A stretch of 64,000 nt of DNA from contig MCFH01000021.1 of the NCBI GenBank assembly GCA_002104945.1, positions 682,001 through 746,000 on the forward strand, given 5' to 3'. The DNA comes from Piromyces finnis finn (Eukaryota; Fungi; Neocallimastigomycota). Below are positions 9,780-37,851 of the stretch, one piece after another. How positions within the stretch are numbered: the first letter of the stretch is position 1; each line of letters opens with the position of its first letter. A program made the translations under genes and the position numbers. Under the pieces are notes generated by a model. The model searched no databases, was not told the origin of the DNA, and saw nothing but the letters and a program-made list of their open reading frames with translations.

Positions 9780-10182
9780 TTAATTTAAAGCTCCTTGTAT
9801 TATCTTTTTTTCTGAATCATTCAAGAATTGTTCGCAGATACCCATAAAGTTATTAACGTTAGCACTTGCACATTTTCTGAAGAAATCTTGTAAATATTCC
9901 TATTAAAATAATAAAAATAGAATTATTATTTTGAAACAAATAAATATTATATTTGTAAAATTTAATGCGATTTATTCTTTAACATACATTAATCTTTATT
10001 TGATAAATTGGATCATTTTTAATATCTTCATCTTCTTCTTCATAACCACCTTCGTCATCATCAATATAACCATAATCAACAATTTCTAGAAGATATACAA
10101 TTAAAAATAAAAATATTTATATGATTAATATAAAATATTATATATATATACATATTTATTGAAAATATAATATATTTATTAT

Positions 10183-10239
<57 letters not shown>

Positions 10240-11802
10240 ATAAATATTTGAAATCACCTTCACCTGCAAGATCATCTTCCCAAGCATCATCTTCCTATAA
10301 TATTATTAAATTGTTAATATTTATTATTATTATTTTTTAATATTTTTTTTAAAGAAAAAAATAAATAAAATATTTATTATCTAACCTCATCATAACCTTC
10401 AACATAACTTTCTTCTTCTTGTAATGAACGTTGATATTCGTTTGCTAATAATTTAACAGCCTTAACATAGAATGGTAATTGATTATATTGTTTAGCTAAA
10501 TTAATGTGATAATTATTTTTTTTTTTTTTAGATTAAATGACTATAAACATTAAATAATCATTTTTATTTATTACTTATTATTTATAGTATATTTACCTGC
10601 TTTACTTTTAGAACGAGTCATAATACCTTAATGATTTTTTTTTTAATAAGTAGAATTAATAATTATTTTAATATTTTTTATATTTATTTATAAAATATCT
10701 TACCATTATTTTCTGTAATAATTAAATCACCTTGAACCATAACATATTGTAAATTTTGTTCAGTAGATGTAAATAATTTACTTAATGAAACAGTACTATT
10801 ATTATTTAATATTATCATAATAATATGTAAAAAGGTAATTAGCATATAATTAAATTTATATATATTAAATAATTAATAATAACAAACCATAATTTAGTCT
10901 TAAAGACACCTTGGAAACTATCAGAGTGTTCACACCATGCTCCTAAAATGATTTCTAAACCACTCTTTCCTTCAATATTTAATTGTGATAAAAATGATGT
11001 GACTGTTTCCATTTGGGATTGAATTAATTGAGCAAAAACGCAAATCATAGACTAAAGTAAAATTAAAAGAAAAAAAAAAACATATTATAAATAATTGATA
11101 AAAATACTTTTATATATTATTTAATGTACTTATAATTGTGATCTTTAACTTACTTGAATAAAGATGGTGTTTTTTGAAATAGCAACACGACGTGTAATAG
11201 CTGTTAATAAATCTGGTAAGATTTGTGCAATATCATTACCACCCTTTAAAATTAGTTTATTAATTAAATCACCTAAGAAAATTGAGGCATTATCAGATTG
11301 AGATGGATCTAACATTTTTGCAATAAATTCAACAATCAAAACAACACCATTCTTTCCAGAATTTGGATCAACCCTATATCATTTAACAAAATATAATAAT
11401 TAGTTGTTGATTTATGGTGTAATTATATAATCAATACAAATTATTGTTAAATTTAATTATACCAAGCAATTAATTGAGGTAAAGCTTTGTGAATCATGTA
11501 TTTTAAGTAGTCTTGGCCAGTCTTTTTTTAATAATATTAATAAAGAATCGAGTGGTAAGAATATATTTTAAAAAATCTTTAATATACTTCAAAAAATTTA
11601 AGAATTACTTGTAAAACGGAATGATCATCAGTAGTTGATAATAATTGAATTAAAGTTGGGAAGATTTGTTCAATATACAATGGTGGTAGTGGATTTACAC
11701 AACATTTCTTTACTAAAACAGTAAGTAATTCAACGCAAGACTATATATTTGAATTAAATTATATTTATTATTTTTCATTTTTATATAATTAGATTTTAAT
11801 AC

Positions 11803-11833
<31 letters not shown>

Positions 11834-14800
11834 TAAAAGTAAAAAATACTTACAGTTGCAACTCCAGAAAAGTCTTCCTTGTCAGAATCAGCAAGGGATT
11901 GCATAACAACTGGAACAACCTTAGTTTGAAGTGGCTCAACAAATCCAGGATTTGGAGCAAGAATTTCAAATAAATCTGTAACAAAACTACACAATAATGG
12001 ATCTTTTTATTAAAAATTTTAATTATAAATAATATACAAAAAAGTTAATTTATTATTAATAATATCATAATGTATAATAAATTTACTTTTATTATAAATA
12101 ATAATACCTTCACAATTTTTAACCCAAACATTAACAATAATTGGAATAATAATTGGTTCATATTGAGCAGTTGTTTCAGGGTTAATCTAAATAATTTAAT
12201 ATGATGTTATTAAATTAAATTTTATTTATCAAAATATAAAATGAGATGCATACCATTATAATGTCTGTGAAAGTTTCAAGAATTAAAAATAGAATATCAT
12301 CTTCGGCATCATTAACCATTGGAGCCATATTTTCTAAAATGGCTGATTGGAAGGGTTGAAGTTTTTCATTTTCTAAAAATGTACAGAAACTAATAGTATA
12401 TGCCGTATCGAGTTAATATATTTCATCAACTATGTAAATAAATTAATAATTAAGAATATATTTTACCTTTTGAGTGCTTTAACTGCAGAAATTTTAACTG
12501 GGAATGGTTGATTTGGTTGTAAAGCATTGACAGCAGCAGTAACATATTGAGTTGCTAATTCATTTGGTAATGATTTAGCAAATTGACTTACAAACCATAA
12601 TGTTCTTCCTTGGAGGAATGGAAGATCTATTTTATAAATGTTGTTGATTGGATTGATAATTTAATATGTCACTATTAAACTTATTTCATACTAAAATACA
12701 AATTGTATAATATAATTTATTTACCTGAATATCCAATATCTTCTAAAATTACGTTATTGAATAAACCACCTAAATCGAATTGAATTTGATTTTGTTCAAC
12801 ACCATCAGTGATGATATTTGAACATCTACCAATAGCTAAAAGACATGATTCATGAATCTTCCACCTATTATTAATATGTATATATTTTAGTTATATTAGA
12901 CTTTTTTGCGGATTAATAAATACACTATAAATGTTTATAAAGACTTTACCAGTTTGGATTACCAGCATTACGAGAATTAATACCTTCTTGGAAGTGACGA
13001 TTTGTAGCATTAATTAAAGCATTAACAGTTTCATATGGGTAAAAAAGAGAAAGACAATCTACAATTAATTCCTGAGTTGAAATTCTAACATTAAAACTGT
13101 AGGTATCTTCATGTTCATCTTGTACGTATTGATTAACATCTGAAATCCAAAGATCCATCTATTAAATGTTATATATATTATATTCATTATTAAACCTATT
13201 TATACGTATTAAACATTTTTATTAGATTAAACAATTTAGTTACTTGTTCTTGTGTCATTTCCATATAAATTAAACAATAGTATATAATTTCTTCAATGAA
13301 TTTTTGTTGATTATGTCCTTCTGGTATTGGAATATTTATTTTTTCATTTTTCTTAAGATTTGTAGTAAATAATGACTTAAATGGTTTCTTACTTGCTAAA
13401 AGATTAAAGAACTCGAAAAGAATATAGAGGAAATTTTCCATTCCAAATGATTCTCCATCAGAATGTTCTTCAGCAAATTCACCTTCTCCATCATTAACTA
13501 CATCTTCAATATATTTTGATGATAAGTTTGTAATATGTGACCATACTACTGGAATATATTCTATTACGTATTTTGAAATCATTTTTGGGAAAGTTTCTAA
13601 TAATTTACATACAAGCTATTATTTTAATTTTACATAATAAATTATATATTAATTACAAATTATATAAATATATATAAATATATGTAACTTTTAAATAAAC
13701 ATTTACATTTAACACTTCAAGTCTTAAACCATAATCTCCAAATTCAGTATTTGGATTTGATTTTAAAAGAATAAGCATATTAGTCATCCAATTATCTAAA
13801 ACAGGACCAAGGTAATATTGAGCAGCATCTGGATGCTCTTCTTTTAAAGTATATAACATTTCAACAAAATCTCTCATTATAGCAACTGCACGAGCACGAG
13901 TTTGTGGAGAGTATAACTTAAATTATTATTATATTATTGTATATAATGAAATATATTAAACTCATATTTTTTAACTTTATATTAATTTTCTTTAAATATA
14001 ATTTATGTGAGTTACTTTTTCTTCATTAAAAATTTTAAATAATTCTGGGAAAAGAACAGGAGCAACAATTGGAAATTGTTGATCAGTAATATCATTACGA
14101 ATAAATTCACTTAAAACATACATAGCACCATGGACTTGTTTAGAATCACCACTACGAAGGTTTTCAAGTAATGAGTCAAAAAGGTGTGGCCAAGATTCTG
14201 GCCAGTCATGTTGTGCAATTCTAGAAATTGCATAAGCCTATTGAAGATGGATAATTGATTTAAGTTTATTAAAACATTAATTTTCAATTTGAAACATCAA
14301 TCATAATAAAATAAAATTATTTAACATACAAGTGCAACTCTTATTTTATTTAAATCATCAGATAAACCAATTAAAAGTTTCTCGCGGACAGCAGCTTTAG
14401 TCTTTAAATATGAAGAATTAAATATAGATATAGTAATTAATTTATAAAAACTAAAGTATATTATTACTTTTTTTTTTTTTTTTTTTAATTTATAAAGAGA
14501 TGATTACAGTTTCAGGAACTTCAGGTCCAACAAATTTTTCATCTTTTGGAGACCAGTGTGTACTAACTAAACTTTTTAAAGTGATAGCTGCCATGTATAT
14601 AAAATAAAAAATAAGATACAATAGTTATATATAATATATATATATTTTAAAATATTACAATAAATATTTGATAATAAAGGAGTTAAAGAAATATTATTTT
14701 ATTTTATTTTATTTTTTGATATATATTATTTAATATTTGTATTATTTTCAAAGGAAAAGGCTTATTAAATTTTTAATATTTAAAGGATATTTGTCTTTGA

Positions 14801-15046
14801 GCAAATGGTAATTCTTTTGCGGTAGCAATATTAATTAAAGTCAAAGCATATTCTATATTTTTATGAAGACATTTTTTTATTAATATTCCATAAACATTAT
14901 TTTTTTTATTATTAAAATTATATGAATATAATATTACCTGGATTTAAAGCAAAACTCTTTAATTTTAATTCGGCTTCCAAACGAATGTTTGGATTAGGAT
15001 CAAGACATGCTGATAAAGTTTCAAAAACGGTGGTATTAAAATCCAT
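9780..15046 (-). CDS. IPO9: Importin-9 (Kap114 ortholog), multi-exon
   Basis: Spliced protein: MDFNTTVFETLSACLDPNPNIRLEAE..., QRQMAAITLKSLVSTHWSP, AYAISRIAQHDWPESWP, WKIHESCLLAIGRC, LPFLQGRTLWFVSQFA, GIMTRSKSK, an acidic loop, DPIYQI, ending ...KKIIQGALN*. About 20 introns, GT-AG except one AT-AC. Confidence 0.92.
14595..14790 (-). other. U12-type AT-AC intron (IPO9 intron 2), 196 nt
   Basis: Minus strand reads CAA AGA CAA|ATATCCTTTA ... TTTTATATAC|ATG GCA GCT ATC. Read-through hits TAA within 6 codons, the preceding exon has no GT, and no AG lies immediately before the next exon. Confidence 0.88.
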
Positions 15047-15203
15047 AATGAATAAATATTTATTAATTCAATTACTTATATTTATCCTATAAAAAATTTA
15101 TAATATTTAATATATTATATAAAATGAGTATTTTAACATTGTTAAAATTTAAATTTTAAAAAGAAATTATAAAAGTTTTATAGCAATATTTTTTTCTATT
15201 TAT

Positions 15204-15280
15204 ATTGGTTGTCAAGTGAAAATAATTTATTTGATTTTTCTGTTTATTTTTTTCTTCTTCATTTGTATATATATTGGTTG
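15204..15280 (-). promoter_or_regulatory. Two CCAAT boxes (CAACCAAT on minus) upstream of IPO9
   Basis: ATTGGTTG at 15204-15211 and 15273-15280, about 160-230 bp upstream of the IPO9 ATG. Confidence 0.4.
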
Positions 15281-16873
15281 AGATAAAAAAAAAACATACC
15301 TTTATATTATATTTAAATTACAATAATTTTTATTTTTATTTTCTTTTTTTACAAAATTTGGGAATTTGATTTGAAATTACTAAAACTCTAAATTAAATAT
15401 TTTTATTTTTTATCTTTTCTATTTTACTAAATATAAATGAAAAAAATAAAAGATACAGTAAAATTGTGATTATTATATATTTCTAAATTTCTAGAAATTT
15501 TATTTTATTTTATTTTTTTTTTTTTAATTTTAATTTTAATAATATATATATATTTTTTTCTGTTGAAATAATAGTAAAATAGAAAGCAGTAATTTTTGTA
15601 TTATCCTTTTAACTATCGTTAAACATTTCAAATTAATAGTAATAATATATAATTATTTAGAATCAAGTAATATAAAATTAATATATCACGAGTATATTAA
15701 TTTCATTGGACAAAATGGAACATAAAATTTAAAGATAAAATTTTCATTACTATTAAAGAAATTGAAGTTAGAAGAAATATTGTTAATACAATAATGTATT
15801 ATTATTATTACTTAAAAAAATATTATAATAATATTTGAAATCTTTCTATTATTATTCTTTATATTTTATTACTAAGAAGGAAAAGACTATAATATAGTAA
15901 TTTAAATATATACTATAATTCATTTTAAATAAAATGTAGATCGAGAATTAAATATTTACCAATAAAAAATATATTTAAAAATTTTGTATACAATATATAT
16001 ATTATATTTTAGAAATCACTTTTTTATATTAGCACTTTTTTGAATAATAAAACTGATTTTATTATTTAAAAATTTAATAGTTTTTTATAATGTACATATG
16101 AAAAAATATATCTCTTTCACTCTATACCAACGTTTTTTTATCATTACTATAACCTTATATTACTTATAAAAAATATAAAAAGTATTAAATTTAGATTCTT
16201 TTTGTATACCTTTTTTTCATTGGAGATTTATTTTTTTTTTGCTTACTTCAACAAATAATACAATATAATAATATATTGAGAATATAATCTAATATATTAT
16301 ACTATATAAGTTTTATTTTATTTTATTTTATATATATATATATATATATTTTTTTTTTTTAATTTTAAATTTTAACACCAAATCAACTTTATAATAAAGA
16401 AGTTTAAAGGAATTTAAAATTTAGATTTCTTAAAATCTTCACATCTTGTTTAAATATAAATTTAAGTAGTTTATTTCATTATTTTATATCTTTTATTTTT
16501 ATTTATTTATTTTCCCCATTTATTAGAAAGGTAAGAACGAATAAAAATGAATAAATATACAAAAATACTTATATATTATTATTATATAACAATATTTTTT
16601 ATGTTTAATTTACAAATTAACTAATTAATTAATTAATTAATTAGTTAATTAATAATAGTATCATTACTTTTGATATTGGTTTATTGATTTATTAAATTTT
16701 ATATTATAAATAGAATTGTTTTAATATATTATACACTATATAATACTTCTTTTAAATTAGTAATAAATTTCTAATTCCATTTTTTATTAACAATTCACTT
16801 TATTTTTTAAATCATTTTATATCTATATATATATACTATTTTATAATTTTCAGATTGTCATAATTAAAACAAT

Positions 16874-35397: not shown

Positions 35398-37851
35398 ATG
35401 GTATGTTTTTTATAAATATTAATAAGTTCATGTAATTAATAAATATTTATGGGTATTCCATTCCCCAAGGTAAATATTATATTAATTTTTATATAATAAA
35501 ATAAATAAAAACAATAATAGCATGGTGTAAAAAAAGCTTATATTTCCGAAGAAATTCGTCAAGAGAAGAAATTAAAAGAAAAATCAGAAATTAATGATTA
35601 TTTAAATTTAGTAAAAATCATTAATGAAAAGGTAATTAATATAATTATAAATTCGAAAAAATAAATTAATTTTTATTTTTTAAATTCTAATAAAATGTCT
35701 TTTTATTAAGAGAAAAAATAAAGTATATGATTCTGAGGCATTTAATATAACTACAAAGATTTTATCAATGAATGTTGAATACTATACTTTGTGGAATTTT
35801 AGAAGAAAAATACTATTACATGAATTCGAAACTTTGTAATATAGATTTTATTAATAATATTTAATTGATATAAATAATATAATTATAATAAACAATTAAA
35901 TATCTTATTATATTTAATTTTTTATTTTATTATTAGAATAATAATTTACTTTTAATATTAATTTTTTTTTATATATATCAATTGATTCTTTTTTCATAAT
36001 TAAAAAAAAATAAATAAATAACTATTTAATACAAAGAACTTCTGAAGAAAAGGAAAAAAAATTTGAAACAGAATTGGAATTTCAAGAAAAATGTGTTAGA
36101 AAGAAGCCAAAATCATATTGGGCATGGAATCATAGACGTTGGATTTTAGAAAATATGGAAAAGCCAAATTGGAAAAGAGAATTATTGTTAGTCAATGGGA
36201 TGTTAAATTTAGATACCAGAAATTGTAAATATAATAATAAAAGAATAAATGTAATTTAAAATAATAATAATATAATGTAATAAATATTAAATTATATACC
36301 ATTTTTATTATCTTAATATTATTAAATAAATAATTACAAAAAAAAAAAAAAGTTCATGGATGGGATTACAGAAGATATGTAATTTCAAAATCTGAAGTAT
36401 CAACAACAAAGGAAGAATTTGAATATACCAAAAAGAAAATTAGTCAAAGTTTCTCAAATTATTCTGCATGGCATTATAGAAGTAAACTTATTCCAAAACT
36501 AATTACTAAGAAAACAAAATGGGAAAAATTATTAGGAAATGGTATAGTATTATCTTTATTGAATTTTGAAATTAGCAATAAAATTTAATTTTAATGCTAT
36601 ATATATAATGATACAGAACTTGAAATGGTAAAAAACGCTGAATATACTGATCCTGCTGATCAAAGTGCATGGTTATACCATTGTTGGCTTCTCGGAGATG
36701 GTAAATAATACTTATTAATAATTTATTTTTAAAATATTCTAATTATTAGTTTTTTTTTTTTTTTAATTTATAATGGATTAGATAATAGTCTTGTAGGAAT
36801 TAAAAATTGTTATATAATTGACAATATTGATAATACATATACACTTGGCATTGAATTTTTTAAAAAAATAAAGGTAAAAAATATGAAATAAAAAAATATT
36901 ATAATATAACAGGAAATTAATAATATAATATTTAAATTTGATTATTGTATAAACAAATCAAAATATAATGAAATAATATTTAGTTAGTTTCATCTAATTC
37001 AATTAAAATTTCCTTAAATAACGAAAATCAAAACTCTGAATTTTTTACTCCATCTATAAGAAAAAATAAATTTAGTAAACTATGGATATCCTTTTTTTAA
37101 ATGATAATTAATATATTTAAATATAAATTAAAATTTTATTAATAGAATATAAAACTTAACTCAATTGATCATACATTTCAAAGTTAACTTTTAAAGATTT
37201 TTCTAAAAATCAAGATTCTATAATAAAAATTAGCTTTAATAAAAACGAAGTGATTACTATAGATGATAAAAAATTAATTATTCCAGATCTTGAATTTGCT
37301 CTTAATTCATTATATATTAAAGATGAAAATATGAATTATAATATAAAAGAACAATTAAATAATTTTAATTCTTTATGCAAAGAAGAAAAAAAAGAAGATC
37401 AAATAAAGATTGTAAATATCCAACCATCTGAAGATATATTAAATGAAGAATTAGAGTCTGTAAGAGAATTACTTGAATTAGAACCAGATAGTAAATGTAA
37501 GTAATATGTATCATCATATTTCTCATTATTATAATTTGTAATAGCAAATTAATTTATAAATTTATATTGAATAATTATTAATAGGGGCATTATTAACATT
37601 AGTTAAAATTTTATCTAAACTTGGAAATAATGAAGATGAAATCATTGAAATTCTTGAAAAATTAAAAGATATAGATATTTTCAGAAAAGAATATTATATG
37701 GATTTTGGTAAGATATTATTTATATTTAAGAGTTAAATTAGTAACAAATAATGTTTTAACTATTTAAAATATAAAATTATCAATTTAACAAAATAGTAAA
37801 CCAATTTAAAATGAATAAATGTATTATGAAGGTATAGTAATATTAATAATC

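Follow-up and report, generated by a model that had tools for sequence, protein, structure and literature searches.

The window analysed here is a stretch of 64,000 nucleotides (nt) from the genome of Piromyces finnis (contig MCFH01000021.1), whose minus strand carries at 9780..15046 the coding region of a Kap114-type importin-9 gene interrupted by a candidate AT-AC intron of the minor (U12-type) spliceosome, the subject of this work. The coding region matches the P. finnis protein ORX50392.1 of 1029 amino acids (aa), named "ARM repeat-containing protein [Piromyces finnis]" and listed in our protein set as P0157; tblastn coverage of the window by this protein runs from 15046 to 9783, and the translated exons 1-5 are identical to it. 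P0157 shares 38% identity over 99% with the Gonapodya importin-9, with animal importin-9 proteins among the same matches, and carries the Pfam domains PF03810, PF25018 and PF25758 as well as the precomputed families HEAT_IPO9_c, IBN_N and TPR_IPO11. The IBN_N N-terminus and IPO9-type C-terminal HEAT region place the gene with importin-9/Kap114 in the importin-beta family. Exon 1 starts with the ATG at 15046 and is joined to exon 2 at 14852/14938. Exon 2 (14791..14852, 62 nt) ends in ...CCATTTGCTCAAAGACAA, encoding PFAQRQ, and exon 3 (14508..14594, 87 nt, MAAITLKSLVSTHWSPKDEKFVGPEVPET), placed by the depth bins of a transcript contig described below, begins with ATGGCAGCT, encoding MAAITLKSLVSTHWSP. 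Between PFAQRQ and MAAITLK lies the candidate intron (14595..14790, minus strand), a phase-0 interval of 196 nt with 10% G+C that opens with ATATCCTTTAAAT and closes with TTTTATATAC, and which is about twice as long as the 16 placeable GT-AG introns of the gene (67-106 nt).

Reading on from exon 2 into this interval leads to a stop after five codons (ISFKY-stop), and an exhaustive script run from exon 2 through to exon 3 detected no frame-keeping, stop-free GT/GC..AG pair, the first GT beyond exon 2 being at 14658. A first-pass annotation of the window, which proposed a U12-type AT-AC intron at 14595-14790, had claimed that read-through stops and that no GT-AG solution exists, and both statements were thus confirmed. 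Because AT is repeated at both intron ends, the cut is ambiguous by 2 nt, with three equivalent cuts, and AT-AC is the canonical reading of it. Read in this way, the termini are AT...TAC and combine AT-AC ends with a pyrimidine at -3, both characteristic of U12-type introns. The 5' splice site ATATCCTTT (14782..14790) agrees with the U12-type consensus at nine of nine positions, and the 3' splice site TAC (14595..14597) is the first YAC 3' of the distal branch motif treated below. As such, RTATCCTTT is not enriched in the window (4 seen, 3.3 expected), and only two of the five [AG]TATCCTT sites in the window stand at exon ends; the 5' motif is significant because of its exact placement at a frame-restoring exon boundary together with transcript evidence and orthologues, and not as a motif alone. 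A nested or recursive mode of splicing, with a U12-type step to a site about 12-24 nt past the distal motif and a subsequent GT-AG step from GTAATATT at 14658, was considered and rejected, since the only downstream AG lies inside exon 3 and ATGGCAG is kept in the transcript.

Splicing was followed in four public runs, in all cases as assembled contigs and not as raw reads, which contain some 45% of the words sampled from the gene, about as expected from the exons alone. Run X2 contains one spliced contig of 3232 nt with 15 GT-AG joints of the importin-9 gene. The depth of this contig is 0 over 14609-14775, and the adjoining depth bins of 85 and 69 bases fit pieces at 14508-14592 and 14789-14852 (plus 5 bases of exon 1); its length fits the removal of exactly 196 nt (2810+73+87+62+151+49 = 3232). 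Both joints flanking exon 3 are unlisted in the X2 table, as are further real joints near low-complexity stretches, and a model built from the listed joints only runs into a stop at codon 680 (679 residues). The public protein ORX50392.1 has the junction QRQ/MAAITLK, and two proteins of 1030 aa, P0222 and P0155, read QRQMAAITLKSLVGTHW across it. The environmental contigs that encode them measure about 3.4 kb, the length of a messenger RNA (mRNA), and are therefore intron-less. Taken together, the evidence that the intron is accurately removed in transcripts, joining ...QRQ to MAAITLK, is indirect but tight. Hardly any credence can be given to the opposite view that no intron is spliced here and the interval is an assembly artefact, a pseudogene break or a constitutively retained sequence: nothing speaks for it beyond the AT-AC joint being unlisted in the X2 table, whereas the X2 contig skips the interval, the public protein and the two transcript-derived proteins read across it, and the same arrangement is found in six other genomes or contigs. 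The spliced transcript contig also points to an intron of the GT-AG type (15089-15299, minus strand) in the 5' untranslated part of the mRNA, its loose end at 15088 carrying on into sequence upstream of 15300.

Relatives of the gene were found by a whole-library search with exon 5 and one word search with the Gonapodya protein, after which the genomic loci were read; P0059 (of metatranscriptome origin) and the Gigaspora protein P0159 (without a genomic record) were excluded from the intron comparison. In six relatives the phase-0 site after ...RQ bears an intron of the form ATATCCTT...AC, and ATATCCTT is identical in all seven versions (six relatives and the window), the ninth base being T in six and C in Ambispora. 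The branch A lies 12 nt from the 3' end in Batrachochytrium dendrobatidis and 14 nt in Borealophlyctis nickersoniae, both with the motif TCCTTGAC, and 16 nt in Anaeromyces robustus with the motif TTCTTAAC; Ambispora leptoticha has a weaker TCTATAAC at about 16-17 nt, read by eye and outside the scripted motif class. The motif TTCTTAAC of Piromyces sp. E2, of which a second copy stands further upstream, places the branch A 75 nt from the 3' end, and TCCTTAAC of a Piromyces-like metagenome contig places it at 56 nt. Gonapodya and Spizellomyces 'palustris' have no intron at the ...RQ site. As the same phase-0 AT-AC intron occurs in Chytridiomycota, Neocallimastigomycota and Glomeromycotina, it predates their split; judged from these sequences, the intron is ancient in fungi and was then lost in some lineages. 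This bears out the ancestral origin put forward in the first-pass annotation, which had suggested comparing the intron position with zoosporic fungi, and Batrachochytrium, Borealophlyctis, Anaeromyces and Piromyces sp. E2 indeed have the same site.

Public importin-9 models are broken at this intron in at least five other early-diverging fungi and can be corrected. The B. dendrobatidis model (L006, GL882879.1) has an inserted ISFS at the intron, the Anaeromyces model (L012, MCFG01000312.1) skips exons 2-3, the gene of Piromyces sp. E2 (L014, KZ150766.1) is broken up into one gene of 60 aa and a partial protein starting from MAAITLK, and exon 2 is skipped in the models of Borealophlyctis (L009, JADGKA010000070.1) and Ambispora (L010, CAJVPS010006759.1). 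The expectation that annotation restricted to GT-AG introns would mis-model the gene thus applies to these five fungi but not to P. finnis, where the model is correct.

In animals, Olthof et al. (2019; PMC6717393, supplement) include human and mouse IPO9 among the minor-intron genes, with TTT (human) or CTT (mouse) as the exon bases before ATATCCTTT. Such an exon end is incompatible with a phase-0 junction after Gln, and the mammalian minor intron is therefore a different intron. At IRQ/LAS the pufferfish Tetraodon has a phase-0 GT-AG intron, GTGGGA...TTTGCAG (L016:1764-1934, CAAE01014479.1), and the limpet Lottia has no intron at IRQ/LAS (L013:1453-1608, KB202620.1); a ATATCCTTT candidate in Lottia was rejected as an intron, as it sits in coding sequence. 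Human IPO9 had been described in the first pass as a minor-intron gene with its junction at the homologous position, of which the former is correct and the latter is not. The intron position itself is common to fungi (U12-type) and one vertebrate (U2-type), and the sharing between fungi and pufferfish may be due to common descent with a change of type or to parallel gain.

The minor small nuclear RNAs (snRNAs), for which a search had also been proposed, were looked for in the genome of the window (56.46 Mb, 232 contigs) at Rfam cut-offs, giving one match per family. U12 (66.6 bits, cut-off 53) and U6atac (52.1 bits, cut-off 33) scored above the cut-off, U11 (38.2 bits, cut-off 39) and U4atac (49.2 bits, cut-off 53) just below it. 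From their sequences, the two sub-threshold matches look real. The central part of the U11 candidate (...GUGCGGAAUCGAUAUCAAGAGAUUUCG...AUAAUUUUUG) presumably agrees nearly letter for letter with human U11, and the 5' end of the U4atac candidate, CGUCCUUAUCU, is the exact 11-bp complement of AGAUAAGGACG in the U6atac candidate (stem II). The U12 of this genome retains the branch-binding GUAAGGA. The single-copy U6atac candidate (L002:1501-1649, C112:211500-211648) departs from the Rfam consensus in positions 12-14 (GCC instead of AAG), 21-22 and 26, the last of which turns the AGC triad into GGC; this change is compensated in the U4atac candidate (L004:1503-1639, C90), where UGCCA faces UGGCA. 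A second U6atac copy with a canonical 5'-site-binding stretch was not found in the genome.

U2-type AT-AC introns exist and are rare, and the long T-rich stretch before the 3' site looks like a polypyrimidine tract, so that removal by the major (U2-type) spliceosome had to be considered. However, the 5' site is the full U12 consensus and not ATAAGT-like, with ATATCCTT conserved in seven of seven versions, and a U12-complementary branch motif is found together with minor snRNAs in the genome, which makes this explanation very improbable. From the 5' site matching at nine of nine positions, the AT-AC ends, the transcript-level junction, the snRNAs and the orthologues, we consider 14790..14595, at a probability of roughly 0.9, to be a real and ancient U12-type AT-AC intron with a predicted dependence on the minor spliceosome, as the first-pass annotation had it. 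The description of the intron as hidden did not survive: it is already known biology, as ORX50392.1 carries the junction and minor introns and minor snRNAs have been published for Neocallimastigomycetes including P. finnis (Larue and Roy, 2023; PMC10639083), with 129 minor introns counted in Neocallimastix californiae (Olthof et al., 2024).

The new element is the branch signal, which is strong and lies far outside the accepted range, as it does in about one third of comparable introns (10 of 27, see below). Within the intron, TCTTTAAC (14689..14682) is the one strong branch word of the U12 type. It is part of the distal motif TTTCTTTAAC (14682..14691, minus strand), and its branch A at 14683 lies 88 nt from the 3' end; hand pairing with the GUAAGGA stretch of U12 from this genome gives 7 pairs, one of them G-U. 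In reviews a branch-to-3' spacing of 10-20 nt, with an optimum at 11-13, is treated as a functional constraint, and towards the 3' end only weak words are present, at -17 and -30. The first, TATCTTAT (14611..14618, minus strand; A 14612, 17 nt from the 3' end), reaches about 5 pairs with U12 in hand pairing and lacks the bulged A; the second, also weak, is ATATAAC (14624..14630, minus strand; A 14625, 30 nt from the 3' end). The remote position of the best motif and the ATATAAC about 30 nt from the end had both been pointed out as a caveat in the first pass, and both are as described. The two strands of the window together contain 14 words of the class T[CT][CT]TT[AG]AC with at least one C, none lies in the GT-AG introns of the gene (1436 nt), and the chance of this class is about 1-2% per intron. 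All three introns of the Piromyces lineage retain the strong motif, 88 nt from the end in P. finnis, 75 nt in Piromyces sp. E2 and 56 nt in the metagenome contig, although their remaining sequence has strongly diverged, and in a MAFFT alignment the three motifs fall into register. In the stretch from motif to 3' site, YAC and YAG are absent from all three; for the window, the zone tested (14598..14676, 79 nt, with one AAC at 14626..14624) has 0 compared to 1.1 expected from composition-preserving shuffles. Folding of the three introns from motif to 3' site gave no support for a bridging hairpin (z = -0.03, +1.26 and -0.94).

These data can also be read as a U12-type intron that branches at the degenerate proximal A14612 (TATCTTAT) or A14625 (ATATAAC), the distal TCTTTAAC being a relic, a decoy, or a docking or enhancer element. 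A proximal branch would agree with the published 10-20 nt spacing and its optimum. Furthermore, TATCTTAT stands exactly at -17 in P. finnis and in the metagenome relative, GTTTAA is found at -17 in Piromyces sp. E2, and -17 is the canonical branch A position of Anaeromyces and Ambispora; this explanation stays alive because TATCTTAT is shared with the metagenome relative at the Anaeromyces branch A position. It is weakened by the poor pairing of the proximal words with U12 and by the retention of the distal motif in three diverged introns at a chance of 1-2% each, and the genome-wide comparison that follows contributes to both sides.

The genome was surveyed with the pattern ATATCCTTT N{30,300} TYCTTAAC, a sample conditioned on the strong motif, and all 59 loci were read; the reversed control occurs 30 times. 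Candidates were regarded as intron-like when an open frame of at least 28 codons led up to the 5' site and the interior G+C was at most 0.17. Under the rule put to the test, the first YAC/YAG whose end lies 8 nt or more past the motif serves as 3' site. In 30 of the about 33 intron-like candidates an in-phase open frame of at least 22 codons followed this first YAC/YAG, compared to only about 5 of the 26 non-intron-like ones passing the open-frame test. The YAC/YAG rule was derived from the first 30 loci and was borne out by the other 29 (hold-out L047-L075). Distances from the motif end to the 3' site in the 27 accepted introns, including importin-9, were 10 (three times), 12 (six times), 13, 17, 23, 23, 27, 28, 28 and 33 nt in the short part; the ten distal cases, from 40 nt upwards, were at 40, 42, 61, 61, 63, 71, 87, 110, 167 and 422 nt. 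All ten distal introns have an in-phase open frame after the first YAC/YAG past the motif. Their distal zones, 1044 nt in total, contain 0 YAC/YAG compared to 10.5 expected from composition-preserving shuffles (Poisson P0 ~3e-5), a count that follows in part from how the 3' site is defined and has its independent check in the following open frame or in homology; the upstream parts of the same ten introns contain 15 YAC/YAG in 834 nt.

Three single loci may be described separately. At L026 (C46:492509 onward) an AT-AC intron of 533 nt has TCCTTAAC followed by a TTTTA repeat of about 400 nt up to the first YAC, which is the 3' site, and the downstream in-phase open frame comprises 171 codons. 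L033 (C124:498166-498275, on the contig of the window) is an AT-AC intron in an XPG/FEN1-like gene with two branch motifs, TCCTTAAC at 125 nt and TTCCTTAAT at 8 nt from the 3' site. The window itself has a second candidate for an AT-AC intron, on the plus strand at 37086-37174, which reads ATATCCTTTTTT...AAACTTAAC, then 14 nt ending in CATAC; its ACTTAAC stands 14 nt before the end, a canonical spacing, and the machinery of this genome therefore handles the usual spacing too.

For branching at a proximal A, L033 is a case in which a canonical proximal TTCCTTAAT accompanies a distal motif. Against it, the YAC/YAG-free zones extend up to the distal motif in ten of ten introns, which a proximal branch would not require. 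We regard proximal branching as a possible but rather doubtful explanation, whereas use of the distal branch, with choice of the first YAC/YAG as 3' site, is slightly favoured. On this preferred reading, a U11/U12 di-snRNP (small nuclear ribonucleoprotein) would recognise ATATCCTTT and the strong motif TCTTTAAC at 14689..14682, branching would take place at the distal motif 88 nt before the 3' end, and the second step would take the first downstream YAC, the TAC at 14597..14595. The customary 10-20 nt spacing between branch and 3' site would then be relaxed in the Piromyces lineage. Whether its minor spliceosome generally works without strict spacing, with a TYCTTAAC branch followed by the first YAC/YAG over 40 to more than 400 nt, is in our judgement an even bet.

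Several observations weigh against the overall explanation, the U12-type intron included. The distal branch lies four to eight times farther from the 3' site than the published 10-20 nt, and the A possibly used is that of TATCTTAT at -17, a position taken in Anaeromyces by the canonical branch A. In human U6atac, G14 and G15 pair with the CC of the 5' site, and the U6atac candidate is without this GG. The AT-AC joint is absent from the listed joints, and the support from X2 consists of depth and length arithmetic on assembled contigs. The YAC rule, in which AAC is skipped, was formulated post hoc on the first batch of loci. Finally, the 3' sites of the survey come from open-frame heuristics, and only the junctions of IPO9, L025 and L060 are better supported, the first by transcripts and orthologues and the other two, both distal, by motifs that the junctions restore: VLL/DLCCGTGTIG at L025 is presumably a methyltransferase motif, and AVFTWHGCTFE/IKGKCDVEYIADETPM at L060 is presumably Clp1-like.

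A short and fixed branch-to-3' distance is an accepted hallmark of minor introns and is built into search tools. The P. finnis genome may disregard it in about one third of its strong-motif AT-AC introns; if so, classifiers under-score such introns, and the genome would be a natural system for studying how the minor spliceosome finds its 3' site. If true, AT-rich simple sequence could also expand inside the 3' part of minor introns, and the importin-9 intron would represent a dated example of the shift, with 88 nt in P. finnis, 75 and 56 nt in its two relatives and 16 nt in Anaeromyces.

With canonical U12-type AT-AC introns (human and plant consensus, PMC8199999; P. finnis, PMC10639083) the importin-9 intron shares the 5' site ATATCCTTT, the AT-AC termini, a TCCTTAAC-like U12-complementary motif, the set of U11, U12, U4atac and U6atac, and a position conserved over deep time; it differs in that the motif is 88 instead of 10-20 nt away, with a T-rich, YAC/YAG-free tract between motif and 3' site. 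The orthologous importin-9 introns of B. dendrobatidis, Borealophlyctis nickersoniae and Anaeromyces robustus have the same codon position, 5' site ATATCCTT and AC end, but measure 88-113 nt and carry TCCTTGAC or TTCTTAAC 12-16 nt before their end, whereas in the Piromyces lineage the three versions measure 131-196 nt and the motif precedes the end by 56-88 nt. The minor intron of mammalian IPO9 is likewise AT-AC-type, in the same gene family and with a ATATCCTTT 5' site, but belongs to another junction, its exon ending in TTT or CTT and not in a Gln codon. In the major introns of S. cerevisiae the branch-to-3' distance is long and variable and the first downstream YAG is used. These are introns of the U2/U6 GT-AG spliceosome, and in the importin-9 intron no bridging structure was detected, but both systems would have in common a strong and fixed branch motif, a variable distance from it, and a 3' site at the first suitable trinucleotide.

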